Sequence record: JN849462.1
Length of the DNA: 64,000 nucleotides
Strand: one strand, 5' to 3'
A model generated the notes under the pieces. The model was not told the origin of the DNA and searched no databases. It saw only the letters and a program-made list of their open reading frames with translations. Made by a program: the position numbers and the translations under genes. Positions 26,201 to 63,784 of the stretch are shown here, in pieces (the stretch's first letter is position 1; each line of letters opens with the position of its first letter).

Positions 26201-26415
26201 TGAGCAATTTTCTTCGAATTCTAGAAGACATGTGTCGCGACTTTCGCGGCGAACTGAACGAAGCAGCGACTGCCGAGGTTGATTACTACCTCATTCAGAT
26301 ATATGTCGCGTTGCTTTCACTAGGCTTCGGCGTGCAGATTGCGATTTTCGTTGCATTTTATGCAATTTTTTACATCCCAATGAGTATGATCGGTCGAGTG
26401 GTAGGTATTAAATAA
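26200..26415 (+). CDS. Small membrane protein
   Basis: TAATG start; C-terminal hydrophobic segment. Confidence 0.6.
   Translation: MSNFLRILEDMCRDFRGELNEAATAEVDYYLIQIYVALLSLGFGVQIAIFVAFYAIFYIPMSMIGRVVGIK
26407..26414 (+). promoter_or_regulatory. Late-promoter-like ATTAAATA
   Basis: gtATTAAATA, identical 10-mer at 28264. Confidence 0.5.
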
Positions 26416-26432
26416 GAGACGGAGGTGGCACT

Positions 26433-26699
26433 ATGCTAAAGTCTTTTATTGAAATATCACTGAACGAAATGACATACCAAGAGTTGCGTGATCTCACGAT
26501 CAATGAGATTCACGCGCTCGTTAAGAAGCTGAAGAAACAGCTTCCGAAGAAGTACAAAGACATTATCGACGAACTAGAACCAGACATGTATGAAGATCTG
26601 ATTGCAGAAATCGCATATGATGGTGGGTTAAAAGGTAAGAAATTTGTCAACTTAAAAATCCCGAAGCGAATCTTAGATAGGTACGCTGACTACTTCTGA
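26433..26699 (+). CDS. Candidate small internal head protein
   Basis: MLKSFIEISLNE CTS-like N-terminus; late-like promoter; GGAGG RBS. Confidence 0.55.
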   Translation: MLKSFIEISLNEMTYQELRDLTINEIHALVKKLKKQLPKKYKDIIDELEPDMYEDLIAEIAYDGGLKGKKFVNLKIPKRILDRYADYF

Positions 26700-26709
26700 G
26701 AGAAATATT

Positions 26710-27102
26710 ATGTTTGATGCTGCTAGTATGCGGGCCCGTTATAAGCCGAAACAACCGTCCGACCTTCAGATGCAGAAAATCGAAGAATTTCAAGATTTTT
26801 TGTATAACACTCTGCAATCAATTGATAAAATAGCTGATACGGAACTTGAGATAAAAGTCGGCGTGAAAGCTGAATTTTATGAATCAGCGGTTGTGCAATT
26901 TGAGAAATTAGGTTACAATATCAGAGCAGTGAAGAAGACATTCGATATTGAAAATCGAATCAATCCTCACGAGCCGCCAGAAATCGGTTACTTAAAGTAC
27001 GAAACTCACAGTTTAGCACTTGCTTATGTGAATCGTATGTTGAGAGAACGCGGTTCTGAACACATGATATTGACGATAATTGATTGGAGACGTAAGGCAT
27101 GA
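26710..27102 (+). CDS. Hypothetical protein (possible paralog family member 2)
   Basis: MFDAASMRAR..LGYNI..IIDW. Confidence 0.65.
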   Translation: MFDAASMRARYKPKQPSDLQMQKIEEFQDFLYNTLQSIDKIADTELEIKVGVKAEFYESAVVQFEKLGYNIRAVKKTFDIENRINPHEPPEIGYLKYETHSLALAYVNRMLRERGSEHMILTIIDWRRKA

Positions 27103-27362
27103 TTATGAAAGCCGAAGAAGCACGAGCACGCAGCATCAAAGTAATGGAAGAGAAATTCCCAGTTGACGATCTAGAACATCTAGATGAGCGCATTGCACAA
27201 GCAACCGACGAAATGCGTTTTGGTATCAATATTCGAATTCGCGACGAAATGCCAGGTATCAATAGCCACAGTCTGAAACGACTATTGATTGAATATCTGC
27301 GTTTGCACAATTACAACGCATTTTATGTTGATGACATCTTGGAGATTCGATGGCAAATTTAA
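27099..27362 (+). CDS. Hypothetical protein (paralog family member 3)
   Basis: MKAEEARAR..NYNAF..LEIRW. Confidence 0.7.
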   Translation: MIMKAEEARARSIKVMEEKFPVDDLEHLDERIAQATDEMRFGINIRIRDEMPGINSHSLKRLLIEYLRLHNYNAFYVDDILEIRWQI

Positions 27363-28078
27363 AGGTTTATTACTGTAGTGACATTCATAATGATTATCAC
27401 GACGAAAACGCGCTAGAACGCATCACGGGCGACAAAGACGCTGTATTGGTAGTAGCAGGTGACATTAACAGCAAAGGGCGAACAGTGCGCGATTTAGAAG
27501 CTGTCGCCGACCGCTGGCGTGCTGTTATCGCAGTGCCGGGAAATCACGATTGGTGGGGTCTTGCGATTCACGAGCGACACAAATTTGAAACTTCGGTTGA
27601 CAATGTTCACGTATTGCTTGAAGATACAGTTCAGATTGACGACGTGACATTCTGCGGGACTACGCTGTGGCACGAAGTCAATGACTGGTTTGAAGGTCAA
27701 CGCTGGAAAGAAAACATGAACGACCGTCGTAAGATTCGCGGTCCTCAATGGCGACCTTTGTATGGTGAAGATGTTCACGCGCTTCATTGCCAATCAGTAA
27801 AATTTATCGAGAAATGTCGCGAGATTGAAGGTAAGAAAGTGTTAATAACACATCACGCCCCGTCTCTGAAGAGCATTTCATCTTACTATGCGTACTCAAG
27901 TACGAATAGTTTTTATTGCACTGACCTTGAGCATTTGCTTGAAGGGTTCAACTTTGCAATTCACGGTCATGTTCATCAAGAATTTGACTATCACGTAAAC
28001 GGCTGTAATGTACTGTGTAACCCACGTGCATACGGCTCAGAAAACCCGGATTACGGGCTTAGGATTTTCGACATATGA
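27350..28078 (+). CDS. Calcineurin-like metallophosphoesterase
   Basis: SDIHND, AGD, PGNHD, THHAP, HGHVH, NPRAY. Confidence 0.88.
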   Translation: MANLKVYYCSDIHNDYHDENALERITGDKDAVLVVAGDINSKGRTVRDLEAVADRWRAVIAVPGNHDWWGLAIHERHKFETSVDNVHVLLEDTVQIDDVTFCGTTLWHEVNDWFEGQRWKENMNDRRKIRGPQWRPLYGEDVHALHCQSVKFIEKCREIEGKKVLITHHAPSLKSISSYYAYSSTNSFYCTDLEHLLEGFNFAIHGHVHQEFDYHVNGCNVLCNPRAYGSENPDYGLRIFDI

Positions 28079-28262: not shown

Positions 28263-28265
28263 CGT

Positions 28266-28273
28266 ATTAAATA
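28266..28273 (+). promoter_or_regulatory. Late-promoter-like ATTAAATA
   Basis: gtATTAAATA, as at 26405. Confidence 0.5.
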
Positions 28274-28307
28274 CGTGCGTCTAATAATAACTTAAAAGGT
28301 AATACAA

Positions 28308-28553
28308 ATGACGCACGATTTGAATATGCTTCTTGAGCAGTACAACCTCGCGAATTACGATTGCGACGGTGATTTTGAAGACTATTACTGGTCGGTGGCA
28401 GAATGGATTGGTCAGACTGTCTTTAGTCACGGTACAATTCGTAAACACGATATTCTTGAACTGCTTTGCGATTTACTTGAAATATCTGAAGACCAAATCA
28501 ACGTAGATGACGTTGACGATTTTCTAACCGAAGTTTATGAGGTGATTGAATAA
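28308..28553 (+). CDS. Highly acidic small protein (possible DNA mimic / internal protein)
   Basis: 21 D/E vs 2 K/R in 81 aa by hand count; MTHDLNMLLE. Confidence 0.65.
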   Translation: MTHDLNMLLEQYNLANYDCDGDFEDYYWSVAEWIGQTVFSHGTIRKHDILELLCDLLEISEDQINVDDVDDFLTEVYEVIE

Positions 28554-31626: not shown

Positions 31627-31650
31627 AAAAGGGGCTTTCGCCCCTTTTTT
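31627..31650 (+). terminator. Intrinsic terminator
   Basis: aaaaggggc-tttc-gcccctttttt. Confidence 0.8.
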
Positions 31651-31652
31651 CG

Positions 31653-31660
31653 TATAAATA
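31653..31660 (+). promoter_or_regulatory. Consensus T4 late promoter TATAAATA
   Basis: Exact match immediately after the terminator. Confidence 0.8.
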
Positions 31661-31683
31661 CTTTCATTTAGAGAGAACCGAAA

Positions 31684-32565
31684 ATGATTATATTCGAAGA
31701 CATTAATCCGCTTTGTGAAGCATTTGATCGTCCAGCACCATACAAATGGGATTCTATGTACAACGAAGCCCGATTTACGGTTGGGAACGTGCAGTATGTC
31801 GCGTTTATCAAAGATAATGACACAGCAAGAGGTTTAAGTCTGTATGTGGCATTTCAGCGTCGTGATAACGCAACTGGTCAATGGACTCACTCACTTGCTA
31901 AAGGCTCGCCGAAAGACGCAATGACGGTATTGAGCACAATACTGGCAGCAACATTTGACAAGGCATCAAAAGTTGAACCGAATGAAATTACATTCAGTGC
32001 ATTTCGTGACGCAGATGACGAAGACGCAAATAAGCGTTTTAGGCTGTACAAGCGTATGGCTGAGCGATACGCAAAGCAAATGAATTACACAGTTCATATC
32101 ACTGGTAATAGCTTCACACTAACAAACAACAATCCACCTAAGATCAGACGACTCCACAATGACGGCATTCACAAAGAAGATGAACTTACATACGTAAATT
32201 TCCCTGCTTGTAATGCATTTACATGGGCGAAGATTTTCTGGCTTGACAATGACGGCGATTACATCAAACTTACATTACCGCACGGTCGTATTCACATTGT
32301 GAGAAAATCAAGTGACGTAATTGAAATCGAAGCAATTACACCGAAAGGTCGTTTTGACAATCTAGATTCAGATGAGATTTGGATGTCGATGTTATCTGAT
32401 ATTAAAGTGAAAGCTAGAGGCGGAAGAACATTTACTATATCAGAGAAAGGCGCGATTTTAGATGCGGGTGATATGATTTTGTGTGAGCAAGGTACGTTTT
32501 ATTACCTAAGTTCTGAAGATGATTTCAAAGAAATCTGGGGGTATGAAATCGACTCGATTGAATAA
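31684..32565 (+). CDS. Late hypothetical protein, candidate internal head protein
   Basis: Own late promoter and terminator; MIIFEDINPLCE. Confidence 0.75.
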   Translation: MIIFEDINPLCEAFDRPAPYKWDSMYNEARFTVGNVQYVAFIKDNDTARGLSLYVAFQRRDNATGQWTHSLAKGSPKDAMTVLSTILAATFDKASKVEPNEITFSAFRDADDEDANKRFRLYKRMAERYAKQMNYTVHITGNSFTLTNNNPPKIRRLHNDGIHKEDELTYVNFPACNAFTWAKIFWLDNDGDYIKLTLPHGRIHIVRKSSDVIEIEAITPKGRFDNLDSDEIWMSMLSDIKVKARGGRTFTISEKGAILDAGDMILCEQGTFYYLSSEDDFKEIWGYEIDSIE

Positions 32566-32595: not shown

Positions 32596-34260
32596 TCATG
32601 GTGTCAGAGGACTACGTTCTTTCACTTTGCGGTCTTCGTCGATTTCAATATCAACAACTCGCATGAAGTTAGCAACTTGCGCTAACTCACTCAAACGTTC
32701 CTGCTTTTTGTAAGCAGACAGGACGCCGCTTTTCGATGAATTGTCTTTGGCTTTCAAGCGAATCACCGCATCGAATTCTGATAATTGAACAACGTCGGCT
32801 TCGAACATCGTATTACGGTTGATGATGAAATCACAATCGCCTTTCTTCCCGTATTTGCCTGGTGCTAAAACAGGTAACCCGTCAGACTCAATAACAAACA
32901 CAACGTTCAGTTTTCTGTCAGATTCGAGCATATCACGCATAATTGATTTGCTATTCTTGCTCGTCGCGTTGACGATTGTTTTCGCGCTAGATTCAACAAA
33001 GTCACATACAACAAATGGATCAGTTGATGATGTGATGAACGCAGTTGAAACGAACGCGCCAGATTCAAGAATCGAGCCGACACGTTTGCTAGACATTTCA
33101 CAACCACGATATAGCGTAACGCCATTCGACACCTTACCAGCTTCATAGAAAGCTCGATCTAAGCGAGAAATTGCATCCCTAACCTTTTCATCACCAGTTC
33201 CGTGAACTAACTCTTCATTGACCTTCCACGAATAACGAGACGCAGAATAGCGAGAAATTGCAGCTTGAGTAAGAGAAGATAGACCAGCATATGAATCTTC
33301 TTGCATCATTTGCAACGATAATTGGTCATATTGCTTCTCAAACGCACGTGAGCGGGCTTTTAACAGTGCGGAGCATACTTCACTAATCAAATTAGATTTA
33401 ACGCCCTCTGAACGTGCTGAAGCGATATATGGGTTCATTCGTTCTGCTACATCAACAAGGTCGATGTTCATATCAACAATTGCTTGAGCAGCGTTAGCCA
33501 ATTTAGTTAGACCGTCAGTTGCTGCCGCTTCTGTTAATTGCTGCTTGATAGATGCACTGACCCGCGCTTCCGTTTGTGGCATTTGCAGAATTTGATTCGG
33601 GACGCGAACGGCAGGGTTTTCTTCTACCCATTGACCTAGAACATCATCTTCATAATCATCATAGCCAGCATCGGCAGTCACGATGATTGTTTTCTTGCTT
33701 GAAATGTCAGTCTCTTTCGCCATTTTAGCAGCAAGAATATTGATTGTTTCTTCGGTTGCTTCGACGAGTTTATCAGCGTCATAGCCGGGTTTCGTGATCA
33801 CGAAGAAGCTGAAATCTTCAGCCATTTCATTATCACCGACGTTCATGATTTTAGTCGTTTCGCAGCCGTATCGAAGTTTCTTGAACAGCGTTTTAACACG
33901 CATGTCGAACATTTTACCGCTACCGATCTTTTGAATACGCATAGACACAGCGTTGGCACGTGTTTTCAACATGAAACTTTGGATCAATTTAACCAATGTT
34001 TCTTGAAACTTTTCTTGGTCTCCCATGTCACGGATGGTTAATCCGCCTTTTTTGCCTCGCATTGCTGAGACAGTACAGAACCACGAACGTTTTCCACGAT
34101 TTCCGATGTCTGATTTTGTTTTAGTTGTGAACGAAACTACAACGTCACGAGCTTCGCCTTTCATATCGATCACAAAGAATTTGTTTTCTTTGGTCGAGCG
34201 AGCCGGATAGTAGTCGTACGTTGCGCTCATGTTTTCAGTTAATTGTTGAAATCCAATCAT
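32596..34260 (-). CDS. alt: Alt-like ADP-ribosyltransferase
   Basis: TLYRG and TSST ART motifs; N-terminus like T4 Alt (AVSMRIQK); late-like promoter; DCD in place of ExE. Confidence 0.75.
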   Translation of the reverse strand: MIGFQQLTENMSATYDYYPARSTKENKFFVIDMKGEARDVVVSFTTKTKSDIGNRGKRSWFCTVSAMRGKKGGLTIRDMGDQEKFQETLVKLIQSFMLKTRANAVSMRIQKIGSGKMFDMRVKTLFKKLRYGCETTKIMNVGDNEMAEDFSFFVITKPGYDADKLVEATEETINILAAKMAKETDISSKKTIIVTADAGYDDYEDDVLGQWVEENPAVRVPNQILQMPQTEARVSASIKQQLTEAAATDGLTKLANAAQAIVDMNIDLVDVAERMNPYIASARSEGVKSNLISEVCSALLKARSRAFEKQYDQLSLQMMQEDSYAGLSSLTQAAISRYSASRYSWKVNEELVHGTGDEKVRDAISRLDRAFYEAGKVSNGVTLYRGCEMSSKRVGSILESGAFVSTAFITSSTDPFVVCDFVESSAKTIVNATSKNSKSIMRDMLESDRKLNVVFVIESDGLPVLAPGKYGKKGDCDFIINRNTMFEADVVQLSEFDAVIRLKAKDNSSKSGVLSAYKKQERLSELAQVANFMRVVDIEIDEDRKVKERSPLTP

Positions 34261-34293
34261 TTTTATAGACTCACCCTTTAGAAAATATATGAG

Positions 34294-34301
34294 TATTTAT
34301 G
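34294..34301 (-). promoter_or_regulatory. Late promoter variant CATAAATA for the alt-like gene
   Basis: tatttatg on + strand, 33 nt upstream of start. Confidence 0.6.
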
Positions 34302-36002: not shown

Positions 36003-36242
36003 ATGATAACGATATACACAATTCCTAACTGTGACGGTTGTCGTCACGCTATCGCCCTCTGTAAGTTCAAACACGTTCCGTATACTGTAATCGAGTTACA
36101 GTCGCAGACTGACATCGACCAATTACATCAAAAGCTTGGTGATAATCGCAATATTCGCGTTCCTCTTGCTATGCATGGTGACACATACATCGGTCACCTG
36201 CCTGAATTGAAGAAATGGGTTGATGAACAGACGTATAAATAA
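36003..36242 (+). CDS. Glutaredoxin
   Basis: PNCDGC CxxC, RVP, YIG. Confidence 0.8.
   Translation: MITIYTIPNCDGCRHAIALCKFKHVPYTVIELQSQTDIDQLHQKLGDNRNIRVPLAMHGDTYIGHLPELKKWVDEQTYK
36234..36241 (+). promoter_or_regulatory. Consensus late promoter TATAAATA
   Basis: Exact match upstream of capsid-fold gene. Confidence 0.8.
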
Positions 36243-36300
36243 AAGAAATTACGTACATTCTCTCCGCTGAAATGCGGCAATAAATTAAAGGAATCAAACA

Positions 36301-37197
36301 ATGACTGTATCTAATAGTAACGGTTTACCAGACATTGTTACTGTTCAAAAACGACTATATCCGCTGATCTTCACGGAAATCGTTTCTGAACAGCCAACAA
36401 AGCAACCCGTTGCAACTGCTTACGGCTTTAAAGCTGTACCTGAAGCTGATGACGGCAGCGGCTGGACACAATTCGGGTTTAGACTTGATCGTTGGTATGC
36501 TCAAGTTGAATCTTCAAAAATGAAGACTGAAATCTCTCTTGAAACGCTGCAAGATATGCAAGCACTTGGTGTTAGTAATTCAGTGATCGTAGACTCACTA
36601 GCTGACCAAATTGCCGATGAAATCAATACGTCGATCATAAGTGCGTTGAATAGTATTTCAACTGTTGGTACTGCACTAACCCTGACGGGTAATACTGATT
36701 TTGAAAAAGGTCAAGATCTTTATACGAAAGTACATCTAGCAGCGTCTGAAATTGAAAAAACAACTGGTTGTAAAGGCACATATGTCGTTGCTGGTGGTAA
36801 ATGTTTCGGTTATTTGACTGGTTGTGGTGTTGTACAGCGAGTTGGCGAATCTGACGTTTACAAAGCATGGTCTGGTTTATACATCGTACACGACAAATAC
36901 GCAACAAGCGATTACGTGACTGTAGGTGTTAAGAAAGACATGGGTGATTATGAAATCTCAAGTCTAGTATTCAGCCCGTATCAATTCGACCAAGCGAATG
37001 ACGGCGCGATTGCTTATCAATACAAGGGCACTGACCCGAAATCATTCCACCCTGTGTATGGTGTTATTGCTCGTTACGCACTAACTGTTCCGCCACTAGA
37101 AGACAATCAGACTGGTGCAGTTGAGATTGATTGGTCGAACTTAGGCGCGCTTGCTAATAGCTCAAAGCTTTCATACACATACGCAGTAACAGTATAA
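36301..37197 (+). CDS. 24: gp23/gp24-family capsid-fold protein (probable vertex protein gp24)
   Basis: FRLDRW..SKMKTEISLETLQDM..DQIADEINTSII resembles the gp23/24 core; FSPY; late promoter. Confidence 0.7.
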   Translation: MTVSNSNGLPDIVTVQKRLYPLIFTEIVSEQPTKQPVATAYGFKAVPEADDGSGWTQFGFRLDRWYAQVESSKMKTEISLETLQDMQALGVSNSVIVDSLADQIADEINTSIISALNSISTVGTALTLTGNTDFEKGQDLYTKVHLAASEIEKTTGCKGTYVVAGGKCFGYLTGCGVVQRVGESDVYKAWSGLYIVHDKYATSDYVTVGVKKDMGDYEISSLVFSPYQFDQANDGAIAYQYKGTDPKSFHPVYGVIARYALTVPPLEDNQTGAVEIDWSNLGALANSSKLSYTYAVTV

Positions 37198-37205
37198 GGT
37201 GTGAC

Positions 37206-37718
37206 ATGAAAAATCATTATGTAGATAATAAAGCTCTATACGCATCACTATGCGAATGGAAAGACGAAATGAATAAGAATCCTGATGCGACAATCCCAGT
37301 ACCTGATGTGGTCGCGATTAGCATCATGAAGATTAGCGAGAACCTGTCTCGCCGTTACAACTTTAGTGGTTACACTGCTACGTGGAAAGAAGAAATGATT
37401 GGTGACGCAATCGAACATTGCTTGCGTTACATCAAAAATTTCGATACTGATAAGTACAACAATCCACACGCTTACATCACTCGTATCTGTTTCAATGCGT
37501 TCGTGCAACGCATTAAGAAAGAAAGAAAAGATACAGCGATTAAATATAAAGTATTCTTATGTGATTCGTCTAACTACACAGTTGAAGGCGAAGAGACTGA
37601 TTTCGAGTTTCTTCAGCAAATGTTAGAGCGTGTCAATTCTTACGAGTCTGGCAAAACGGCTAAAGCTCAACCAGATGAACAGAAAGAACCACTTAACTTA
37701 CAGAAATTTTACGATTAA
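37206..37718 (+). CDS. 55: Late sigma factor gp55
   Basis: NHYVDNK.LY, RYNFSGYT..WKEEMIGDAIE, NPHAYITRICFNAFVQRIKKE. Confidence 0.96.
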   Translation: MKNHYVDNKALYASLCEWKDEMNKNPDATIPVPDVVAISIMKISENLSRRYNFSGYTATWKEEMIGDAIEHCLRYIKNFDTDKYNNPHAYITRICFNAFVQRIKKERKDTAIKYKVFLCDSSNYTVEGEETDFEFLQQMLERVNSYESGKTAKAQPDEQKEPLNLQKFYD

Positions 37719-37727
37719 GGAATTAAC

Positions 37728-39173
37728 ATGTTAGGTAACTTTGACTCATTTCTGAGTGAAAATCGCCGTCAAACTCAGGGTGGAAAAATCTACCCTAAGT
37801 TTGGTCAAGTTATTGTTGAGCTAGGCACTGCATCTACTGAGTTCAGCAAAGGCAAAGGCGTTGAAACAACTATCGGCATGATGGAGAAGGCAAATGAGCT
37901 TAAATCTATCATGAACACTAAACTGGCTGAAGATAAAAACGTCGATGAGAAACATTTCGACATCAATCTGAGCGAGAACGTAAGCACGGTTAACCTGCTT
38001 ATGGAAAACGAATTCTTGGCGCTGCCAGCTCATGAGCTACAGCAAGTCAAATCAATGATCATGTGTACTGAAGCACGTCTTCCTAGCATCGTGATTAAAG
38101 GTGGTTCATTGGATCAAGTTGTTGCTGAAGCAACGAAACTAGGCTACAAGAAAAGTGACATTCACGTTGTTTTCCCGATGCGTGAAATGAAAATCAATCT
38201 TGCTGACTCTGACAAGCTTGTTATTGAATCTCTATCAATTGACGACAATTCAGCGTCTGAGATTCTTTCAATGGCTGAAAACATCGAGCTTGGTGACGTT
38301 TATGTGACTGTAGAATCGGTTGATTCTAAGGCTGAACTGTCTGAAATCACTGAACTGAAGATTAAATCTGGTAAAAATGCGCTGACACTAGCTGCACTTA
38401 ACCGCAAGATCATGGATCAGTTTATCGTGAAAGAAGCGAAAGAAGTTTCATATGCACGTGAGCGCAAAGAAGACACTGGTCTCCCAATGCTTGAAGGGTT
38501 CAAGGCATACGATCTGAAACAGAACATCACCATGATTGAACATGCTCAGAACGCATTCACAAAAGAGATTACAGTAGCTCCGCTATCTTCGACTGCGTGG
38601 CAAAATCTTGTTGATGTTAAAGAAGCTTACTTCGATAACGGTTGGAAACTGAAGCACAACAATACAAGCATCGTTCTAACAAACGCTGAACACGCAATGC
38701 GTGCTGGTCGTGTTTGTGAAGAATATCGAGTCGAGCTATCTGAAGCAGGTTATCCTCTTCTTGATATGATCGCAATGATGGAAAGCAAGGGCATGACTCG
38801 CTTTGATTGTAAATCATTTGCTGAAGCAATGATGAAATTCGACGGCTGTGTTACGCCAGAGCGCCAGACTGTGACTGCATTTGTTACTGAATCTGCTAGT
38901 AATCGCGTATTTCACCCGAATATTATGTCAAGCCTACGTCCTGTGACCGAAATGGTTGATGATGTTGACAGTCTAATTCGTGCGCTTGCTAATGATCAGT
39001 TCAGCACGTTCAAAATCGGACAATCATTCTCTGAATCAATGCTTGACCAAGAAACGCTATACTCTATGATGGAAAGCATTGTTTCTGATGGTGTTGATGT
39101 ATCAGTGGACGGGACTTTGATTGAATTCAAAGTGAATGCAACCAATTACCTAATCAATATCGACATAAAATAA
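37728..39173 (+). CDS. Large hypothetical protein, candidate internal head protein with degenerate P-loop-like N-terminus
   Basis: MLGNFDSFLSE; GGKIYPKFGQVIVELG. Confidence 0.7.
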   Translation: MLGNFDSFLSENRRQTQGGKIYPKFGQVIVELGTASTEFSKGKGVETTIGMMEKANELKSIMNTKLAEDKNVDEKHFDINLSENVSTVNLLMENEFLALPAHELQQVKSMIMCTEARLPSIVIKGGSLDQVVAEATKLGYKKSDIHVVFPMREMKINLADSDKLVIESLSIDDNSASEILSMAENIELGDVYVTVESVDSKAELSEITELKIKSGKNALTLAALNRKIMDQFIVKEAKEVSYARERKEDTGLPMLEGFKAYDLKQNITMIEHAQNAFTKEITVAPLSSTAWQNLVDVKEAYFDNGWKLKHNNTSIVLTNAEHAMRAGRVCEEYRVELSEAGYPLLDMIAMMESKGMTRFDCKSFAEAMMKFDGCVTPERQTVTAFVTESASNRVFHPNIMSSLRPVTEMVDDVDSLIRALANDQFSTFKIGQSFSESMLDQETLYSMMESIVSDGVDVSVDGTLIEFKVNATNYLINIDIK

Positions 39174-39181
39174 GGTGAAAC

Positions 39182-39829
39182 ATGAAACAATTTTGTAATT
39201 TTTTAGCTGAAGTTCAGAAATACAGTTCAGCGGCTACGTCGATTCGCGGTAAAGAAGTTGCTGCATTGGTTAAATTGTTCAAGTCAGGCATGTTCGTGCC
39301 TGGCGGAACAGCACTTGACTACGGCGCGGGCAAATACGGTCGTAATGCTGAATTTCTTCGCAGTGAAGGCATTCGCACTTACGCATACGACAAATTCAAT
39401 GGGACATCGGCTGATGGTTGGAACGCAGTTAGCTTAACTATCCCGAATGGTGAGACATTCGATACTGGCTTCACGTCATACGTATTGAACGTTGTTCCTG
39501 AAGAAGTCGAAGCAGAAATCATACGTGATGTTGAGTCTCGTACACGCGGTAAAGTGTTCCATATTACACGCGGTACTGACATCACTCAGACTGTATTCAA
39601 CGTAATCAGCGGTAAGAGCAAGAATGACGTAATGATGCAATTCATTGCTCAAGAATATCCAGAGATTTACGGTCAGATTGTCGCGAACGGTGGGACTAAA
39701 GAATTGGCTAAAGAGATTGCAACTCGTGGAGTTGTAACAGCTAAAGACAGTTTCCAACGTATTCCAGACCTATCGAAATACGGTTACAAGAAATCTGGTT
39801 CAGGCGCTTCAGTCGTTTGGACAAAATAA
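39182..39829 (+). CDS. Class I SAM-dependent methyltransferase with CTS-like N-terminus
   Basis: ALDYGAGK motif I, YAYD, FTSYVLNVV; MKQFCNFLAE. Confidence 0.75.
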   Translation: MKQFCNFLAEVQKYSSAATSIRGKEVAALVKLFKSGMFVPGGTALDYGAGKYGRNAEFLRSEGIRTYAYDKFNGTSADGWNAVSLTIPNGETFDTGFTSYVLNVVPEEVEAEIIRDVESRTRGKVFHITRGTDITQTVFNVISGKSKNDVMMQFIAQEYPEIYGQIVANGGTKELAKEIATRGVVTAKDSFQRIPDLSKYGYKKSGSGASVVWTK

Positions 39830-39846
39830 TTTGAAATTATTTGAAT

Positions 39847-39926
39847 AAAAGGGTTGCTTCGGCAACCCTTTTTGCGTATTATAGCTACATCGAAACGAGA
39901 TACGAACACAAAGAGAGAACGTTATG
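39847..39926 (+). promoter_or_regulatory. Class A terminator/promoter cassette
   Basis: aaaagggTTGC-ttcg-gcaaccctttt; 17 nt; TATTAT 39877; near-identical copy at 55207. Confidence 0.8.
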
Positions 39927-40184
39927 ATGATTACTGAATACCTACGCAATAATACAGTTCGCGAAATGCTAGATTGCCCTGCTACTTCGCTTGCATTCTG
40001 GTCACAAGAATTCATGATCATCCCTGATGAAGACCTAACTTTTGTTGAAAACGATGAAAACGTTCTAATCAAGATGAACGAAATCGAAGTTGTTGTGCCG
40101 TACAATATGACGCTTGAAGTTCTTGAGCAAATGTTCGGTGACGCACTAAGTGAACATGTTAGAAAGATTAAAGAACGTGTTTAA
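39924..40184 (+). CDS. Early hypothetical protein
   Basis: Follows cassette. Confidence 0.7.
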   Translation: MMITEYLRNNTVREMLDCPATSLAFWSQEFMIIPDEDLTFVENDENVLIKMNEIEVVVPYNMTLEVLEQMFGDALSEHVRKIKERV

Positions 40185-40208
40185 CATCGGTTTATCTCAT
40201 CCTATAAT
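40179..40208 (+). promoter_or_regulatory. Class B promoter
   Basis: G-TTTAAC, 17 nt, TATAAT 40203. Confidence 0.65.
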
Positions 40209-40231
40209 ACTCAAACATTGAAGGAAATATT

Positions 40232-40690
40232 ATGATCTACATTGAAACAAGCAACATCCTTTCTGATGACACTCTCGGCTTTGCAATGGCTGGCGCGCCT
40301 CAAGTCGATAAACTTGAGAAAAAAGAGCGTGACAATGTGCTTAACAAAGCTGTTGAAGTCAAGCTCTACGAACGTCTTCCATCGACTGCTGTACTTGATT
40401 TTCTCTTGAATCAAAAAATTCCCTTCATCGCCGTACTGAGCAAAGTAGAAGTTATTGCTGAACAGCAACGTGCGTGGTTTGATGCAATTGGCAAGCACTT
40501 GAATATTGATGTGATGTACACAGATTTTCAAGAAGTCGAGCACAATCTCGATACGCTGTTGATTGCTGAAGATCGACATGAACTGAAACGTCACGCTCAA
40601 AATAACGGTAGAATTCTACCATTCACAACTGAAACACAATTTCAATTCATTATCGACCATCTATCTTCGGTCGACAATAAGGAGCAGTAA
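40232..40690 (+). CDS. Hypothetical protein
   Basis: AAGGA RBS; first gene of the operon leading to 47/46. Confidence 0.7.
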   Translation: MIYIETSNILSDDTLGFAMAGAPQVDKLEKKERDNVLNKAVEVKLYERLPSTAVLDFLLNQKIPFIAVLSKVEVIAEQQRAWFDAIGKHLNIDVMYTDFQEVEHNLDTLLIAEDRHELKRHAQNNGRILPFTTETQFQFIIDHLSSVDNKEQ

Positions 40691-41040
40691 TGCAAGAGAA
40701 GCCAGATTTACTCAAAGACGACGAAATTGTTGATGTAGTTGAAGATCAAGAAGTTCTTGACTATCTTGATGAACTACAAGCTCAACGTCGTGCGCTTGTC
40801 GAGAAAGAAGCACATCGTCGTATCAAGAAAAACTCGCGTGAGATTAAACGTCTGCATAAACACGCTGAAAAGTGTCTAATCGAAGGTAACAAAGCGGGTT
40901 ACGTCTACGCAATCGGCAAACTTCGTTCTATTACTGGTCAGACAGTTGGTGACGATGTACTTGAAACGTTATGGAAAACTAGTCGTGAGCAAGTACTAAC
41001 AATCGCACGTTCATTTGCAGAAGCGAAAGCAGGTCAATAA
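40690..41040 (+). CDS. T4 a-gt.4-like protein
   Basis: RRIKKNSREIKRLHKHAEK..Y.YAIGKLR pattern. Confidence 0.7.
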   Translation: MQEKPDLLKDDEIVDVVEDQEVLDYLDELQAQRRALVEKEAHRRIKKNSREIKRLHKHAEKCLIEGNKAGYVYAIGKLRSITGQTVGDDVLETLWKTSREQVLTIARSFAEAKAGQ

Positions 41041-48855: not shown

Positions 48856-49482
48856 TCACTTAGACTTGCAATTGTCAAAGTGGTGACGAGTCATTGCACC
48901 GCCCTTTTTGCCTTGCTTTCCGCAATGCGGGCACGTGACAACGGGGAGATTCAAAAGAGCCTCGCGTATTTTCTGCGAGTGTTCTTTTGATTTCGAGACA
49001 CCTTTTCGTGATTTTGACATTTTTTCTTTTGTTGTATCACTAGTGGGTTCTCTATTCTCCCATGCCTTTTTAAGGTTTTCACGATGTTCTTCGCTGAATG
49101 GGGCACGTTTGATACCTGTCAGTGTTTGAGAAATGGCTTTTGCATGAGCTTCACGTGCATAACGATAGCTGTGCGAATTGTGTCGATTATCGTTGGCTAG
49201 TCGATGCCACGCATGTGCCATTTTGTTATTGTTATAAATTTTAAACAGGAGCCAGTGGACTAAGAAGTGTTCTCTTGCAGTGAGTACTACAAGATTACTC
49301 TTTTCTTCTGAATCCATGTCAAATACGTATTCATCACGTTCTATACTCTTGGTATATCTACACATAGACTTAGGTAATATGTGATGGAGTTCTACGTAGA
49401 CTGGTGCAGTTGACTTCGTCCACGCTCTTTCGACTGCTCGATTTATAATTTCGTCGTGTATTCTTTTGTAATTCATATGCAT
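48856..49482 (-). mobile_element. Free-standing HNH homing endonuclease (Mob-like) with NUMOD3-type repeats
   Basis: ELHHILPKS..NLVVLTAREHFLVH; SEEHRENL, TKEKMSK; CPHC; probable start 49476. Confidence 0.85.
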
Positions 49483-58831: not shown

Positions 58832-58839
58832 TCTAAATA
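58832..58839 (+). promoter_or_regulatory. Late promoter variant TCTAAATA
   Basis: Directly after the terminator, same layout as 31653. Confidence 0.6.
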
Positions 58840-58866
58840 GAAGAAACAACACAAAAAGGTATCATA

Positions 58867-60321
58867 ATGAAACTGTTTACTGAATTTTATCAAGAAGTTC
58901 GACTTGACGAAATCTCAGATCGTGCGAATATCGACATTGATTGGGATTGGGGTCATGAGAACGGTACGGGAGAAACTTCGGCGAGATTTGACGCAGCCGG
59001 TGAGAAATTCCAAGTTAGCGTTGACGAGAGCAACCCGGGTTATTTCACAATCACATTCCAGAACTCTAGTGGTTATTCTCAGACTGGTAGAGCGGGACAC
59101 TCTGCGGCTGCTGTATTCTCTGGCGTATTGACGACTTTACGTGAATTCACCGAAACGTACGAAGAAGAAATGGGCATGAAACCATATGAATATGACTTCA
59201 GCGCAGCGTACGAACTACCGAGAAATCACGACTATTACTCGTTGGTTCACAATCGTCGCGAGGCAACTCGTTTAGATGAAGAAAGCAAGAAAAAGCTATT
59301 GAAAGACTTGATTTCTCGCCCTATGCTTTACTACGCACTATCGTTGACGTTTGGTAAAGAATACGGCTATTCAACTGAAATTAGCGACCGTTGGCTTGCT
59401 CGTCTTGCAGGGGGCGCGAATGATTTCCGTTCCGTTCGTAAGAACGTGACTCGAAGCATTCTGTCGATGAATGACAACGACGTTAACCAAGCGTTGATGA
59501 ACATGAGCGGTTCTGTTTCGTTCACTCTTACCAACGAAAACGAACGTCCTAGCAGCTACGACACAGCATTCGGTGGCGGTCCGTCTCTTGAAGACTACGT
59601 TGATGAAGCAGACCAGTACCAAATCGAAGCGTGGATCAATGATGGTCGTGAAGATGAAATCATCGAACATGCTGATTGGCAAACTCTAGTTCGCATTGCG
59701 GAATGGGGTCTGATGCACGATGAACTGATTTTCCATGATGATGAAGACGTTCGAAACGCGGTAATCCGCACAGACTACGAAATGGGCGAGAAACTAGCCG
59801 AATCGCCTGAGTGGGAACATCGTAAACAAGCTGCTGAAAATGGTTTTGGCATTTGGGATCTTGTTCTTGACTCTGACGAAGACGTGCGCGAAGCTGCATG
59901 GGACTGGTCGTTTGAAAATGACGATGCTGATACTCGAATCACATACGCGAAACGCTACGAAGGCAACTTCGGTCGCGCAATGGCTGAAGACGTGTGGGAT
60001 CGCATGATCGACGATTCAGATGACTATGAAGAGCGTCAATACGTAGCTGAACAAGGTTATCGTCTTGAAGAACTTCTAGCAGACCATGACGAAGACGTGC
60101 GTTCTTCTGCAATCAATGCTGTATTCACGGTAATGGGTCTGGATGGTCGAGAAGCGGCTGAGTTCTTGATGGAAAACTCTGAACCTTACCAAGAAGAAGT
60201 GTTTGAATACGCGATTAACGGTAACTTCGGTCCATCTTTCGATGAAGCACTAATCGAAATTGCTGAAGAAAACGGCGTTGATGTTTCTGAGTACAAAGAA
60301 GACGAAGACGAAGACGAATAA
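58867..60321 (+). CDS. Acidic protein with HEAT-like repeats, candidate internal head protein
   Basis: MKLFTEFYQEVRLDE; repeated D.DEDVR motifs. Confidence 0.75.
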   Translation: MKLFTEFYQEVRLDEISDRANIDIDWDWGHENGTGETSARFDAAGEKFQVSVDESNPGYFTITFQNSSGYSQTGRAGHSAAAVFSGVLTTLREFTETYEEEMGMKPYEYDFSAAYELPRNHDYYSLVHNRREATRLDEESKKKLLKDLISRPMLYYALSLTFGKEYGYSTEISDRWLARLAGGANDFRSVRKNVTRSILSMNDNDVNQALMNMSGSVSFTLTNENERPSSYDTAFGGGPSLEDYVDEADQYQIEAWINDGREDEIIEHADWQTLVRIAEWGLMHDELIFHDDEDVRNAVIRTDYEMGEKLAESPEWEHRKQAAENGFGIWDLVLDSDEDVREAAWDWSFENDDADTRITYAKRYEGNFGRAMAEDVWDRMIDDSDDYEERQYVAEQGYRLEELLADHDEDVRSSAINAVFTVMGLDGREAAEFLMENSEPYQEEVFEYAINGNFGPSFDEALIEIAEENGVDVSEYKEDEDEDE

Positions 60322-61937: not shown

Positions 61938-61940
61938 ATA

Positions 61941-62008
61941 AAAAGGGTTGCACTGTGCAGCCCTTTTCTATATCATGAGCACATCAAAACGAAAGAGAGA
62001 CGATTATG
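61941..62008 (+). promoter_or_regulatory. Class A terminator/promoter cassette
   Basis: aaaagggTTGCACtgtgcagccctttt; 17 nt; TATCAT. Confidence 0.75.
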
Positions 62009-62746
62009 AACGTTGAACAAACACTACGTGAATTGAATATCACCAACAACCAAGTTTACACACGCATCGTAAATGAAGTAATGAAACCGAACATTCTTTC
62101 AATTTATGAACACATGAGATTGAAAATCGGATATAATCAAGAAATTTGGTATGGTGATGCTGATGTGTATGTATCAATCGAGCCTGCATTCGAGAAATAC
62201 AGAGAACAGCATGACGTTTTGATCATCAACAACGTTGTATCGTGCTTTGATCGAGCAATTGTCATTGCAATTATCAACAAAGAGACTGGCGACATACCAT
62301 TGTGTAAATGTGTCGAGGGTCAAGGTGTGAAACACGAGGGTTGGAATTTCGGTGATCATCGTGATTGGAAGATTGAAGGTCTCGATACGCTTCGCGAACA
62401 CAAGTGGAGATTTGGTTACGAGGATTTGCGCGACGACTCGCTTGTATTTCAGCTAGATTCGATTTGGGCTGATATTCGACCAGATAAGCCGTATAACGGC
62501 TGGCATCGTTCGTCTTATGGTTGTGGGTTTCATGTTGAGAATCTACTGTACGCAGAACGCGAAATCAGATGGGCATTCAGTTCTGTTGTTGAAGAAGAAG
62601 CATATACAATTTGCGAAAAAGATAAAAAAGGGGCGAATGCCCCTTTTTTTATGGTCTGTAGATCATGTGATTTGAACCCATTCGTTCCCATGTACCTAGA
62701 TTCATGCGATTTTTCATTTCAACGAAGAATGCGGGGTTTGCTCTAA
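62006..62746 (+). CDS. Early hypothetical protein; true end probably near 62624
   Basis: ORF reads through the terminator; one extra A in the A5 run would give a stop just before it. Confidence 0.65.
   Translation: MNVEQTLRELNITNNQVYTRIVNEVMKPNILSIYEHMRLKIGYNQEIWYGDADVYVSIEPAFEKYREQHDVLIINNVVSCFDRAIVIAIINKETGDIPLCKCVEGQGVKHEGWNFGDHRDWKIEGLDTLREHKWRFGYEDLRDDSLVFQLDSIWADIRPDKPYNGWHRSSYGCGFHVENLLYAEREIRWAFSSVVEEEAYTICEKDKKGANAPFFMVCRSCDLNPFVPMYLDSCDFSFQRRMRGLL
62624..62650. terminator. Bidirectional terminator between convergent genes
   Basis: aaaaaaggggc-gaat-gccccttttttt. Confidence 0.8.
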
Positions 62747-63704
62747 TGTCATCAAGTGGCAGTGCAACAACACCTTCAGTTTTATGCGCCAATAGCTCTA
62801 GTTTATCAAGCAAATCAGACGTTGTACGACCGTCATATTTGAATTGACTGAACCAATAACCAATCTTACTGAATTTCGTATCTCTTGTGTATTTCACATC
62901 AAAGCCTTTCAGAGCATACGCTAAGTTACTTTCTTTACCGTGAAACGGCTTGCGATATGCGCTATGTTCAGCACCAGCACGAGCAAGCAATCTCTTCTTA
63001 GCTGCGTCTGGTAGATTGAACCACCCATCAAAGTTTTTCTTGAAGTTCAACATCCATGCTTCTGGCGTAGCTGGTGAGCCTTTGAAGTATGCTTTCGTAT
63101 CAGCAATGGCTTGTGCATAGCGTGCGTTAATCTCATGAGAATAGTTCTGATATTCGTCGTGAGACGCTTCGTGACCGCTTTTAGCGTGACGGATGAACTC
63201 TTTATCAATGTATCCGCGTTTACGCCCTGAGTGTTGATACACGCCCTCTGCGTCGCTTGTCTCGAAGTCTTCAATGTCACCAGAACGATAGTTGTCGTAA
63301 GCGTGTTGCAGTTCATGTAATGCCGTGCTATACAACTGTGGTTTCTGCAATCTGAATTTCGCCATGATTTGACTAACTGCTGTTACTCCAGTTATATCCA
63401 CGACAAGCTTGAGATACCCTGCTTCTGTGATCGAGTCGTCATGTAATTTGCCATTCCAAACACCGAGTTCGGTTGGGTTATTATTGTCTAACTTCAGATA
63501 TGCTAGAATACCTTCAGCTAGTAATGCATCGAACTCACTCTCACCAGTTCTGATATTCAGAGTTTTTGTGTTGACGGATAGTTTATTTGGATCCCATGGT
63601 GCTTTACTTAGAGCGCCTTCTAACTGGCGTTCCAATGTATCGACGATGGTTTTTGACGCTTGTTCTAATGCGCGTTGTGATTGTACGTTTTCAAAAATAA
63701 TCAT
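62649..63704 (-). CDS. Putative zinc metallopeptidase (HExxH), candidate internal head protein
   Basis: LHELQHAYD and downstream HEINA; late-like promoter; MIIFENVQSQRALE. Confidence 0.65.
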   Translation of the reverse strand: MIIFENVQSQRALEQASKTIVDTLERQLEGALSKAPWDPNKLSVNTKTLNIRTGESEFDALLAEGILAYLKLDNNNPTELGVWNGKLHDDSITEAGYLKLVVDITGVTAVSQIMAKFRLQKPQLYSTALHELQHAYDNYRSGDIEDFETSDAEGVYQHSGRKRGYIDKEFIRHAKSGHEASHDEYQNYSHEINARYAQAIADTKAYFKGSPATPEAWMLNFKKNFDGWFNLPDAAKKRLLARAGAEHSAYRKPFHGKESNLAYALKGFDVKYTRDTKFSKIGYWFSQFKYDGRTTSDLLDKLELLAHKTEGVVALPLDDIRANPAFFVEMKNRMNLGTWERMGSNHMIYRP

Positions 63705-63722
63705 CTTTTTTCTCGAATTCGG

Positions 63723-63784
63723 TTGACTGTATTACTTATTTAGGTTAATATCTCTCTCATCGAAACGAAAGAGAGAACATTATG
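63723..63784 (+). promoter_or_regulatory. Class A early promoter (+) overlapping late promoter CCTAAATA (-, 63737-63744)
   Basis: TTGACT 63723, TAATAT 63747, catcgaaacgaaagagagaacattATG. Confidence 0.65.

Follow-up and report, generated by a model that had tools for sequence, protein, structure and literature searches.

The first 64,000 nucleotides of the genome of Vibrio phage phi-pp2 raise the question of whether eight dispersed late genes, whose products begin with a similar short peptide ending in a motif of the L-x-E type, encode proteins that are carried inside the phage head. The window, i.e. the whole stretch of DNA that was analyzed, corresponds to bases 1-64000 of phi-pp2 (100% identity), a KVP40-like relative of T4 with a 246-kb genome and 382 genes. 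We consider it fairly probable that these genes encode prohead cargo with propeptides of the T4 capsid-targeting sequence (CTS) type, which would be cut by a gp21-type protease and kept in the head.

The T4 head machinery that such a process would use is present in phi-pp2, i.e. a gp21-type prohead protease and a gp22/gp67/gp68 scaffolding core within a T4 head-assembly set of gp67, gp68, gp21, gp22, and gp23. The core and protease proteins also start with CTS-like peptides (MKFISEAVQE in gp68, ..QLLE in gp22, and ..LLIE in gp21), and alignment with mature T4 gp23* places the maturation cut of gp23 after ..AGLNE62 of phi-pp2, showing at the sequence level that the predicted L-x-E cleavage site is conserved. 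With T4 as the model for both the cleavage and the delivery into the host cell, the late-transcribed proteins would carry a short N-terminal propeptide with hydrophobic/aromatic residues and an (L/I/F)-x-E end that docks them on the scaffolding core during prohead building; the prohead protease would cut after the Glu, and the mature protein would be kept within the DNA-filled head and, as Alt and IPI do in T4, would leave it together with the DNA when a cell is infected.

For each of the eight genes, the start, the N-terminal peptide, and the sequence upstream agree exactly with what the sequence-only reading had given, and the six genes described there as having TAAATA promoters indeed have them, with the 8-mer NNTAAATA located 18-34 nt 5' of the ATG. 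The promoter is ATTAAATA in pp2_046 (26407-26414, + strand) and pp2_050 (28266-28273, +), TATAAATA in pp2_056 (31653-31660, +), CATAAATA in pp2_057, the Alt gene (34294-34301, -), TCTAAATA in pp2_094 (58832-58839, +), and CCTAAATA in pp2_099 (63737-63744, -). Both pp2_057 and pp2_099 are antisense to early neighbours, and a hairpin terminator (a G+C hairpin with a T-run at 31628-31650, +) precedes pp2_056. The genes at 37728 (pp2_063) and 39182 (pp2_064) have no promoter of their own and lie downstream of gp24 and gp55 with gaps of 8-9 nt, in an operon whose head (36234..37718, +) consists of promoter TATAAATA (36234-36241) and the annotated genes for a gp24-like vertex protein (36301-37197, +) and the late sigma factor gp55 (37206-37718, +). 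Between the gp24 promoter and these two genes, a scan of the + strand in which weak 5-6-bp candidates were common throughout called no terminator-like site that combines a G+C-rich stem with a clean T run.

In phi-pp2, the TAAATA core truly marks late promoters: the 246-kb genome has only 96 copies, counted over both strands, and 45 of these are followed by an annotated start at a distance of 8-55 nt, versus 3.6 expected (p=4e-38), and variants such as TCTAAATA and ATTAAATA are also found before tail-tube and baseplate genes. The association between leader and promoter is real as well. When the motif was counted genome-wide in genes with and without TAAATA, a comparison suggested by the sequence-only reading, it was commoner with TAAATA, both as an [LI]-x-E leader (17/51 versus 41/331, Fisher p=3.6e-4) and as an L-x-E leader (10/51 versus 24/331, p=0.008).

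Taken alone, the loose L-x-E peptide motif is a weak indicator, as L-x-E with its Glu at residues 7-15 is found in 34 of the 382 phi-pp2 genes (9%) and [LIVMF]-x-E at residues 5-16 in 116 (30%). The strict T4-type pattern ^MK.[FY]..F[LIVY].E is matched among the 382 genes only by those at 39182 (pp2_064) and 58867 (pp2_094), a count of two that was reached by none of 2000 shuffles. According to the T4 record, IPII and IPIII start with MKTYQEFIAE; the first 10 residues of this CTS are enough for targeting, for which residues 4 and 7 are important, and residues 8 and 10 are important for processing (PMC9026906; PMC10229621). The pp2_064 (MKQFCNFLAE) and pp2_094 (MKLFTEFYQE) starts match the IPII/IPIII sequence at these four critical positions. 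In orthologs from the sister phage 6E351A, the x-E site is kept and the mature part is conserved while the leader sequence drifts. As a feature, the leader is retained even by distant homologs, at 36-50% identity.

The 554-aa product of pp2_057 (32596..34301, -, opposite in strand to its neighbours) had been read as an ADP-ribosyltransferase, and it matches the Alt-like PHROG 802 (E=3.8e-89) and is annotated as Alt in the record; its leader, MIGFQQLTE (34260-34234, -), keeps L-x-E in the 6E351A Alt ortholog (MIGFQELNE). The assignment of pp2_064 (KVP40.0066; 39182..39829, +; 215 aa) as a class I SAM-dependent methyltransferase is likewise borne out by its 232 homologs, many with PF13489, by an AF2 model with a pLDDT of 90, and by 216 PDB methyltransferase matches; the nearest folds are those of enzymes that methylate small molecules and RNA rather than DNA. 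In the AF2 model the leader (39182-39211, +) is not packed and is modelled with low confidence, residues 1-8 having a pLDDT below 50. A leader is found in 90 of 111 pp2_064 homologs (81%) versus the 30% background (p=7e-22), and one of these homologs is flanked by the tail sheath and terminase genes of a T4-like contig.

Two further genes share a domain. The product of pp2_056 (KVP40.0058; 31628..32565, +; 293 aa) starts with MIIFE|DINPLCE| (31684-31719, +), where bars mark predicted sites, and continues into a conserved AFDRP.. domain (PHROG 6387). In nine relatives an indel falls exactly between MIIFE and the L-x-E before AF, i.e. between the two predicted sites. By hhalign, the N-domains of pp2_056 and pp2_094 are homologous (94.5%, E=8e-8). 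In pp2_094 (KVP40.0097; 58832..60321, +; 484 aa), the leader MKLFTEFYQE|VRLDE| (58867-58911, +) precedes this N-domain, C-terminal HEAT repeats, and an acidic tail, and relatives keep MK.F..F[YI].E and the second site. The earlier description of an acidic HEAT-like protein holds, with a pI of 4.2 and a PF02985 score of 24.9 bits versus a cut-off of 23.5, which homologs pass too. The extreme acidity of pp2_094 is unlike the basic T4 internal proteins and was counted against the packaging reading.

The HExxH protein pp2_099 (KVP40.0103; 62649..63744, -, also opposite in strand to its neighbours; 351 aa) has the invariant motifs HELQHAxDxxRS and HE(I/V)NAR. It had been called a protease, a label that is not supported: its confident AF2 model (pLDDT 87) fits no known fold, with no significant match in the PDB or to any annotated BFVD protein. 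Part of its leader, MIIFE|NVQSQRALE (63704-63663, -), may be a piece of the fold, because the A-L-E site falls within a confidently modelled helix and the IIFE..SQ..LE segment is also kept in distant homologs bearing extra N-terminal extensions.

Independent evidence came from the published particle proteome of 6E351A (PMC12028318, Table S4), with orthologs mapped by PHROG id; this is another phage than phi-pp2, its orthologs are roughly 45-81% identical, and its particles were only PEG-precipitated, clearly non-structural enzymes being among the 94 of 444 proteins listed. Within the tag range 0080-0141, at least 15 spectra in both replicates were found only for the orthologs of pp2_057 (VP_0095, 122/233 spectra), pp2_094 (VP_0134, 58/109), pp2_064 (VP_0103, 31/79), pp2_056 (VP_0094, 16/61), and pp2_099 (VP_0140, 18/25) and for gp24 (90/145), i.e. 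for five of our eight genes versus 1 of 54 others (Fisher p=5e-5). The particle evidence for pp2_099 and pp2_056 is only moderate because the leaderless enzymes NadV (16/23) and FolE (13/7) reach similar counts in these PEG-only particles. Beyond the window, the leader-bearing pp2_113, pp2_370, pp2_371, pp2_146, and pp2_288 also have orthologs in the particle list.

The orthologs of the other three genes were not robustly detected. The pp2_046 gene (KVP40.0048; 26407..26699, +; 88 aa) has the leader MLKSFIEISLNE (26433-26468, +), which varies (..HDRFTE in 6E351A) ahead of a conserved MTYQELRDL.., and it is a weak cargo candidate, the detection of its ortholog VP_0082 (PHROG 14461) being marginal (3/0 spectra). 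For the candidate pp2_050 (KVP40.0053; 28266..28553, +; 81 aa, pI 4.05; leader MTHDLNMLLE, 28308-28337, +), the absence of VP_0087 from the particle list is uninformative because trypsin would yield no peptide of 7-30 aa from this ortholog. The label of possible DNA mimic in the sequence-only reading had acidity as its sole basis and is not supported. Packaging of pp2_063 (KVP40.0065; 37728..39173, +; 481 aa; leader MLGNFDSFLSE, 37728-37760, +) is not supported, its ortholog VP_0102 not being in the particle list despite 27 usable tryptic peptides. The proposed degenerate P-loop is borne out for pp2_063, whose N-terminal half is a zeta-toxin-like domain with such a P-loop; among about 200 distant T4-like homologs, its relatives RB43ORF241c and KP15_200, which start with MKSFKDFVSLDE and MKSFKQFTESTLTE, retain GGAGSGKG and pass Pfam Zeta_toxin (PF06414).

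The view of all eight genes as head cargo is partly supported; the support covers the five with conserved leaders and robustly detected orthologs and does not extend to pp2_063 or, with its marginal counts, to pp2_046. The best-supported cargo in the window is pp2_057, pp2_064, pp2_094, its domain paralog pp2_056, and pp2_099. Because of the CTS-type starts and the finding of most counterparts in sister-phage particles, phi-pp2 probably carries several enzymes inside its head, and by analogy these may be delivered together with the DNA.

Such packaged proteins might be mainly structural rather than effectors, acting in the scaffold/core or in DNA organisation of an unusually long prolate 250-kb head. 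This appears unlikely, the enzyme signatures of Alt, the methyltransferase, and the HExxH protein and the protein binding suggested by the HEAT repeats arguing against it, although it would fit above all the PHROG 6387 domain family (pp2_056, pp2_094, pp2_113, and pp2_370), which has several paralogs per genome with one common domain directly after the leader and no catalytic motif or known fold in searches. All five 6E351A members or relatives (0094, 0154, 0242, 0018, and 0134) are in particles, and the bulk internal proteins of T4 are dispensable and DNA-associated (PMC9026906). However, the family is confined to schizotequatroviruses, and proteins that determine head size should rather belong to the core head genes.

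The PEG-only preparation and its non-structural enzymes, the commonness of the loose motif, and pp2_063, which has the motif yet was not detected, would also agree with abundant late cytoplasmic proteins or assembly factors co-precipitating with particles, their L-x-E being incidental to any capsid targeting. We judge this quite improbable: robust detections among the approximately 62 genes in range are confined to our genes and gp24, the contaminant enzymes have neither leaders nor late promoters, leaders persist at 36-50% identity, predicted sites bound the indel in the pp2_056 family, and two leaders match the strict T4 CTS. Least credible of all is a location outside the head, as tail, baseplate, neck, or fibre accessories with the leader as another assembly or chaperone signal. 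The 6E351A proteome carries no location, its authors filed some neighbouring unknowns under tail morphogenesis (PMC12028318), and the T4-like contig mentioned above has its methyltransferase homolog next to a tail gene, with the sheath gene on one side and terminase on the other; nevertheless, T4 Alt is a head protein (PMC9026906), the leaders resemble the T4 IP leader and the starts of the phage's own core gp68, gp22, and gp21, and a tail role is not known for enzymes such as a methyltransferase.

Prohead cargo with CTS-type leaders is closest to T4 IPI, IPII, and IPIII, with which phi-pp2 shares a leader of about 10 residues (hydrophobic/aromatic at 4 and 7, aliphatic at 8, Glu at 10), the same gp21 protease and scaffolding core, and a constant leader on variable cargo (PMC9026906). 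Unlike the small, basic (8-20 kDa), and clustered T4 proteins, the phi-pp2 cargo is of 24-62 kDa, enzyme-like or acidic, and dispersed over the replication region, with leaders of two kinds, MK.F..F..E and M(S)IIFE, and with predicted processing and packaging. The packaged and injected RNA polymerase ADP-ribosyltransferase Alt of T4 is matched by pp2_057 in family (PHROG 802), in a short L-x-E leader, in lying near the ligase gene with pp2_056 alone in between, and in the abundance of its ortholog in sister-phage particles, although only its C-terminal half (residues 282-553) aligns to the Alt profile. In phage P1, the DarB methyltransferase/helicase of the Dar system is head-packaged, injected, and protects DNA, a precedent for a methyltransferase-type enzyme acting as the DNA enters; pp2_064, a small, single-domain class I methyltransferase, is likened to it by its possible role and not by sequence, and the Dar incorporation pathway differs from that proposed for phi-pp2. 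The giant phages phiKZ, 201phi2-1, and SPN3US have many head-internal proteins, including paralog families, which are processed by a gp21-related prohead protease at a short motif, with the cut following its Glu (PMC9026906). The phi-pp2 set resembles them in putatively head-internal paralog families, a gp21-related protease, and predicted Glu sites. Unlike them, phi-pp2 has neither a known virion RNA polymerase nor a known inner body, and it is truly related to T4, with a CTS of the T4 type.

The window is identical to bases 1-64000 of Vibrio phage phi-pp2 (JN849462), as shown by a megablast of positions 37000-45000. The phage phi-pp2 is about 99% identical to KVP40 and belongs to the genus Schizotequatrovirus, as a 246-kb relative of T4; Vibrio natriegens is on record as a host of its relatives (PMC12028318 Table S2). 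According to the annotated records, its 26-64 kb stretch is the replication and nucleotide-metabolism region (gp39 topoisomerase, gp30 ligase, gp46/47, gp45/44/62, RegA, gp43 polymerase, RnlA and PseT), in which the annotation also places the genes of a gp24-like vertex protein and of the late sigma factor gp55. The eight candidate cargo genes start within this stretch at 26433 (pp2_046), 28308 (pp2_050), 31684 (pp2_056), 34260 (pp2_057, minus strand, annotated Alt), 37728 (pp2_063), 39182 (pp2_064), 58867 (pp2_094) and 63704 (pp2_099, minus strand), and the N-terminal peptides and upstream sequences of all eight read exactly as the sequence-only reading had given them. The gp24-like gene (36301-37197), located between nrdH and gp55 and preceded by its own TATAAATA, encodes a short protein of 298 aa; the PDB chains of T4 gp24 have 415-427 aa. 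An intact ORF of 246 aa at 62006-62746 (plus strand), unannotated in the phi-pp2 record, fills the gap between pp2_098 and pp2_099, and KVP40.0102 is annotated at the matching place in KVP40. A MobE-type HNH homing endonuclease gene at 48856-49482 (minus strand), one of the phi-pp2-specific mob insertions (PMC3468402), is encoded in antisense orientation in the interval from regA to the polymerase region; a perfect TATAAATA precedes it by 18 nt.

The shared feature of the eight proteins is a short leader ending in x-E, which had been likened to the capsid targeting sequence of T4. By itself the peptide motif is weak: L-x-E is found at residues 7-15 in 9% of the 382 phi-pp2 genes, and the wider [LIVMF]-x-E at residues 5-16 in 30%. 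The genome-wide count beside the late-promoter element TAAATA, proposed as a check by the sequence-only reading, showed nevertheless that [LI]-x-E is enriched behind this element (17/51 vs 41/331 genes, p=3.6e-4). A cleavage-type site is present at sequence level at the end of the leader in 8/8 candidates, pp2_099 having both I-F-E at residue 5 and A-L-E at residue 14. In the T4 record, ipII and ipIII both begin with MKTYQEFIAE followed by Ala; the first ten residues of IPIII are enough for incorporation, residues 4 and 7 mattering for targeting and residues 8 and 10 for processing, and T4 Alt sheds a 7-residue propeptide (PMC9026906). The strict T4-type leader pattern is found only in pp2_064 (MKQFCNFLAE) and pp2_094 (MKLFTEFYQE), i.e. 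in 2/382 genes, a result that was reached in 0/2000 shuffles; pp2_046, pp2_050, pp2_056, pp2_057, pp2_063 and pp2_099 conform only loosely to the pattern of a hydrophobic or aromatic residue at position 4 and again at position 7. Another type of leader, M(S)IIFE, is common to pp2_056, pp2_099 and pp2_370, the last encoded outside the window. The core proteins of phi-pp2 begin in a like style (gp68 MKFISEAVQE, gp22 MQIKEQLLE, gp21 MELQLLIE), and the genes of a gp21-type prohead protease (pp2_361) and of the gp22/67/68 scaffolding core are annotated at 223964-226141. When the mature capsid protein gp23* of T4 was aligned to phi-pp2 gp23, the maturation cut fell after ..AGLNE62, and therefore the L-x-E preference of the protease is probably conserved. 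Cleavage after the leader Glu would yield mature proteins starting with AF[DS]RP.., VQKYSSAATSIR.. and [IV]SDRANIDIDW...

The second feature, the predicted late promoter, was analyzed on all 382 annotated genes of the whole phi-pp2 genome. TAAATA is present in only 96 copies on both strands of the 246 kb, and 45 of them have a start codon 8-55 nt downstream, vs 3.6 expected (p=4e-38). Such scarcity, with nearly half of the copies just upstream of genes, suggests selection against stray late promoters. Relaxed TAAATA-type variants are likewise found ahead of genes for the tail tube, the baseplate and the neck, which together with the enrichment indicates that the relaxed late-promoter rule adopted in the sequence-only reading was sound. 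In six of the eight candidates, the ATG is preceded at a distance of 18-34 nt by an 8-mer with TAAATA at its end. The two others, pp2_063 and pp2_064, are located downstream of gp24 (whose TATAAATA is at 36234-36241) and gp55 with gaps of 8-9 nt, and their late expression is predicted from this arrangement to require read-through of transcripts started at the gp24 promoter. Between that promoter and the two genes, the terminator scan called no plus-strand site with both a G+C-rich stem and a clean T run. Upstream of pp2_056, within 31628-31660, a G+C hairpin with a T-run (AAAGGGGCTTTCGCCCCTTTTTT) is followed two bases later by TATAAATA, an arrangement also present in the sister phage 6E351A. 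This predicted terminator-plus-late-promoter junction would insulate pp2_056 from the ligase transcript. The hairpin was read directly from the sequence, since the terminator scan missed it because an A/T extension of the stem consumes the T-run.

The leaders were then compared among relatives. In the 6E351A orthologs the leaders have drifted while the x-E site and the subsequent mature sequence are retained, as in MAKSLNDFLTE vs MKQFCNFLAE (pp2_064), both followed by VQKYSSAATS. Some relatives of pp2_056 start with MIIFE-xxxxL.E-AF.RP and others with MIIFE-AF.RP, the indel falling exactly between two predicted cleavage sites, and all pp2_094 relatives show MK.F..F[YI].E, a variable spacer, a second x-E site and then a conserved [IV][ST]D[RE][AS]N. 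For pp2_064, phage and metagenome data contain 232 homologs, and 90 of the 111 that are full-length (81%) carry a leader, typically MK.F..FL.E, vs a background of 30% (p=7e-22); in one T4-like contig, the homolog is flanked by tail sheath and terminase genes. In a 258-kb metagenomic contig (L009:5333-6633), a gene of 220 aa with a faint T7-kinase-like hit, a AATAAATA motif just upstream and the N-terminus MRISELSK.. comes before the methyltransferase homolog P0053; this contig may belong to a jumbo phage that packages a set of enzymes of its own.

To assess whether such proteins reach the particle, we used the spectral counts published in 2025 for two replicates of 6E351A particles, a schizotequatrovirus of Vibrio crassostreae (PMC12028318 Table S4), matching phi-pp2 proteins to 6E351A genes by PHROG id (PMC12028318 Table S8, with PHROG ids and GenBank accessions); these particles, from a phage different from phi-pp2, had been PEG-precipitated only. 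The orthologs of pp2_057 (VP_0095, 122/233 spectra in replicates 1/2), pp2_094 (VP_0134, 58/109), pp2_064 (VP_0103, 31/79), pp2_056 (VP_0094, 16/61) and pp2_099 (VP_0140, 18/25) were all detected. Across tags 0080-0141 of 6E351A, the equivalent of the candidate range in the window, at least 15 spectra in both replicates were observed only for these five orthologs and gp24, i.e. for 5/8 of the candidates vs 1/54 of the other genes (p=5e-5). The ortholog of the gp24-like protein is itself abundant in particles (90/145 spectra). Of the remaining candidates, pp2_046 (VP_0082) gave 3/0 spectra, and pp2_050 (VP_0087) and pp2_063 (VP_0102) were absent from the particle list. No conclusion can be drawn from the missing pp2_050, whose ortholog has no tryptic peptide of 7-30 residues; for pp2_063, with 27 such peptides expected, the absence is informative. 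The claim that the eight proteins are packaged thus found partial support, for pp2_056, pp2_057, pp2_064, pp2_094 and pp2_099, with pp2_046 marginal and pp2_063 unsupported.

Five of the eight identities rest on the following data. The ADP-ribosyltransferase label of pp2_057 agrees with its match to the Alt family, PHROG 802 (E=3.8e-89, residues 282-553). As judged from its AF2 model (pLDDT 90), in which the first 8 residues are disordered and the leader is unpacked, pp2_064 is a class I SAM-dependent methyltransferase, as had been proposed. It gave 216 PDB methyltransferase hits at E<=1e-3, the nearest being small-molecule and RNA enzymes rather than DNA methyltransferases, and its glycine-rich SAM motif D46-x-G48-A49-G50 (DxGAG) is invariant; a Pfam scan of pp2_064 itself gave no hit above cut-off, and PF13489 is found in many of its homologs. 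A conserved kinase-plus-methyltransferase pair, suggested by the adjacent pp2_063 and pp2_064, was considered and dropped because Pfam gave no match for the genes next to the methyltransferase homologs in two other contigs, so that at the Pfam level nothing ties them to the P-loop domain of pp2_063. The description of pp2_094 as acidic and HEAT-like was borne out: the protein is very acidic (pI 4.2), its C-terminal HEAT repeats score 24.9 bits for PF02985 vs a cut-off of 23.5, a marginal value, and 10/10 of the remote homologs scanned that align to the repeat region (residues 260-417) clearly pass this profile. In pp2_063, ELGTASTEFSKGKG replaces the Walker A sequence GGAGSGKG of its RB43 and KP15 relatives, which pass PF06414 Zeta_toxin (30.7 bits vs a cut-off of 22.3) whereas pp2_063 does not. 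In agreement with the degenerate P-loop first noticed, the sequence comparison makes pp2_063 a predicted degenerate relative of zeta-toxin-like P-loop kinases. It has about 200 distant relatives in RB43 and in T4-like phages of Klebsiella, Enterobacter and Aeromonas, and the related-locus search with pp2_063 returned near-identical phages only. As for the HExxH protease, the motif stood, HELQH being invariant in 18 homologs of pp2_099 (HELQHAxDxxRS) and a second motif, HE(I/V)NAR, also being conserved, but neither a zincin fold nor a peptidase-family profile was found. Searches of Pfam, NCBIfam and PDB sequences with pp2_099 gave no hit, and its model (pLDDT 87) had no PDB match at E<=1e-3 and matched only uncharacterised viral proteins in BFVD. 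Since these fold searches are uninformative, 'protease' is unproven, and a metal-dependent hydrolase is plausible.

The small pp2_050 (pI 4.05, 26% D+E) gave no family hit in Pfam, PHROG and NCBIfam scans, and a role as DNA mimic is a guess based on acidity. When the eight proteins were scanned with Pfam, NCBIfam and PADLOC, nothing came out above cut-off besides the marginal HEAT hit, and PDB sequence searches with pp2_064 and pp2_099 gave chance-level hits only.

Other leader-bearing genes lie beyond the window. Just past it, pp2_113 (68130-68981; L003:18130-18981) starts with MKFSEYQNELTE followed by AFDRPAP, its post-leader sequence being the same as that of pp2_056; both belong to PHROG 6387, and the ortholog VP_0154 gave 37/51 spectra. 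Further examples, in genome loci L004, L003 and L006 at 233009-234567 (minus strand), 87902-88444 (minus strand), 157241-158359 (plus strand) and 173405-173608 (minus strand), are pp2_370 (MSIIFE), pp2_371 (MIEFLTE), pp2_146 (MELKTFDEF..LKE), pp2_288 (MKNLKSFMEE) and pp2_307. The particle list includes the ortholog of every one of them (VP_0018 9/14, VP_0019 21/34, VP_0188 7/21, VP_0357 18/4 and VP_0380 14/15). The cargo set of the phi-pp2 phage family is likely to comprise about ten proteins. In other T4-like genera, RB43ORF241c (L015:2495-3328) and KP15_200 (L016:2450-3289) are zeta-toxin-like P-loop kinases with PF06414 above cut-off. They start with MKSFKDFVSLDE and MKSFKQFTESTLTE, i.e. 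with the T4-type leaders MKSFKDF..LDE and MKSFKQF..LTE, and are antisense to their neighbours with a late-promoter-like CAATAAATA about 30 nt upstream, features that make them candidate packaged kinases. No KP15 or slopekvirus virion proteome against which this family could be checked was found in the literature.

Presence in a particle preparation may have other causes than targeting. The authors of the 6E351A study suggested that enzymes such as NadV and FolE are delivered by the particle, with no mention of targeting leaders (PMC12028318). In phi-pp2, neither nadV (138690-140183) nor folE (71268-71942) has a leader or a late promoter, and with counts of 16/23 and 13/7, respectively, their products look more like carry-over than targeted cargo. 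As leaderless enzymes reach such values in the preparation, counts near 20 are only moderate evidence. The main alternative concerns what the packaged proteins do. A common domain of about 125 residues lies right after the leader in pp2_056 and pp2_094 (hhalign 94.5%, E=8e-8), and this PHROG 6387 domain recurs in pp2_113, pp2_370 and VP_0242 of 6E351A, each of which, directly or through its 6E351A ortholog, is in the particle list; these paralogs might have a structural or DNA-organising role within the large prolate head. Profile comparisons of the pp2_056 family with Alt, pp2_063 and the pp2_099 family revealed nothing besides the shared IIFE leader.

For the five supported proteins taken together, we consider the following mechanism to be rather probable, more so in the case of Alt, pp2_094 and pp2_064 and less so in that of pp2_099 and pp2_056. 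The leader would dock the cargo protein onto the scaffolding core, a gp21-type protease would remove it, and the mature protein would stay in the head and exit with the DNA like Alt and the internal proteins of T4, steps that we infer, ejection into the host being proposed by likeness to those proteins. For the removal step, the indel between the predicted sites in the pp2_056 family and the unpacked leader in the pp2_064 model are indirect evidence. An effector activity after ejection is less certain. More tentatively still, and with the odds somewhat against it, T4-like phages of marine bacteria, including the KVP40 type, may routinely load a conserved SAM methyltransferase into the head through a CTS-type leader, and some ten further schizotequatrovirus proteins likewise (an ADP-ribosyltransferase, the HExxH protein, HEAT and PHROG 6387 paralogs, with zeta-kinase relatives in other genera), to be ejected with the DNA and to modify host or phage molecules before phage gene expression. 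If true, it would amount to an extensive layer of pre-expression effectors that has not yet been described and that might partly account for the breadth of the host range.

In the literature searched, this cargo and its extent are undescribed, and none of the open papers joins KVP40 with the capsid targeting sequence or internal proteins, the sole paper with both terms citing KVP40 for capsid size. The new elements are the likely set of about ten leader-bearing particle proteins in the phi-pp2 phage family, the leader-bearing methyltransferase family widespread in uncultured marine phages, and the leader-bearing candidate zeta-kinase family of other T4-like genera. Should the cargo list prove right, the payload brought in by this vibriophage family of broad host range would be much larger and richer in enzymes, one item, the methyltransferase family, bearing the leader in hundreds of uncultured marine phages, and it would offer concrete candidates for immediate-early counter-defence or host takeover; late promoter plus leader would become a sequence rule predicting injected proteins in T4-like genomes, and the natural leaders could be used for protein packaging in Vibrio phages. 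The leader criterion also helps to tell true cargo from leaderless enzymes, such as NadV and FolE, proposed as particle-delivered.

The capsid-targeting mechanism of T4 has been known since the 1990s, and to our knowledge the natural cargo has been identified in T-even coliphages only, where it consists of Alt and of small internal proteins that include an anti-restriction factor. The mechanism proposed here for phi-pp2 is that of T4, whereas the cargo and its extent differ.
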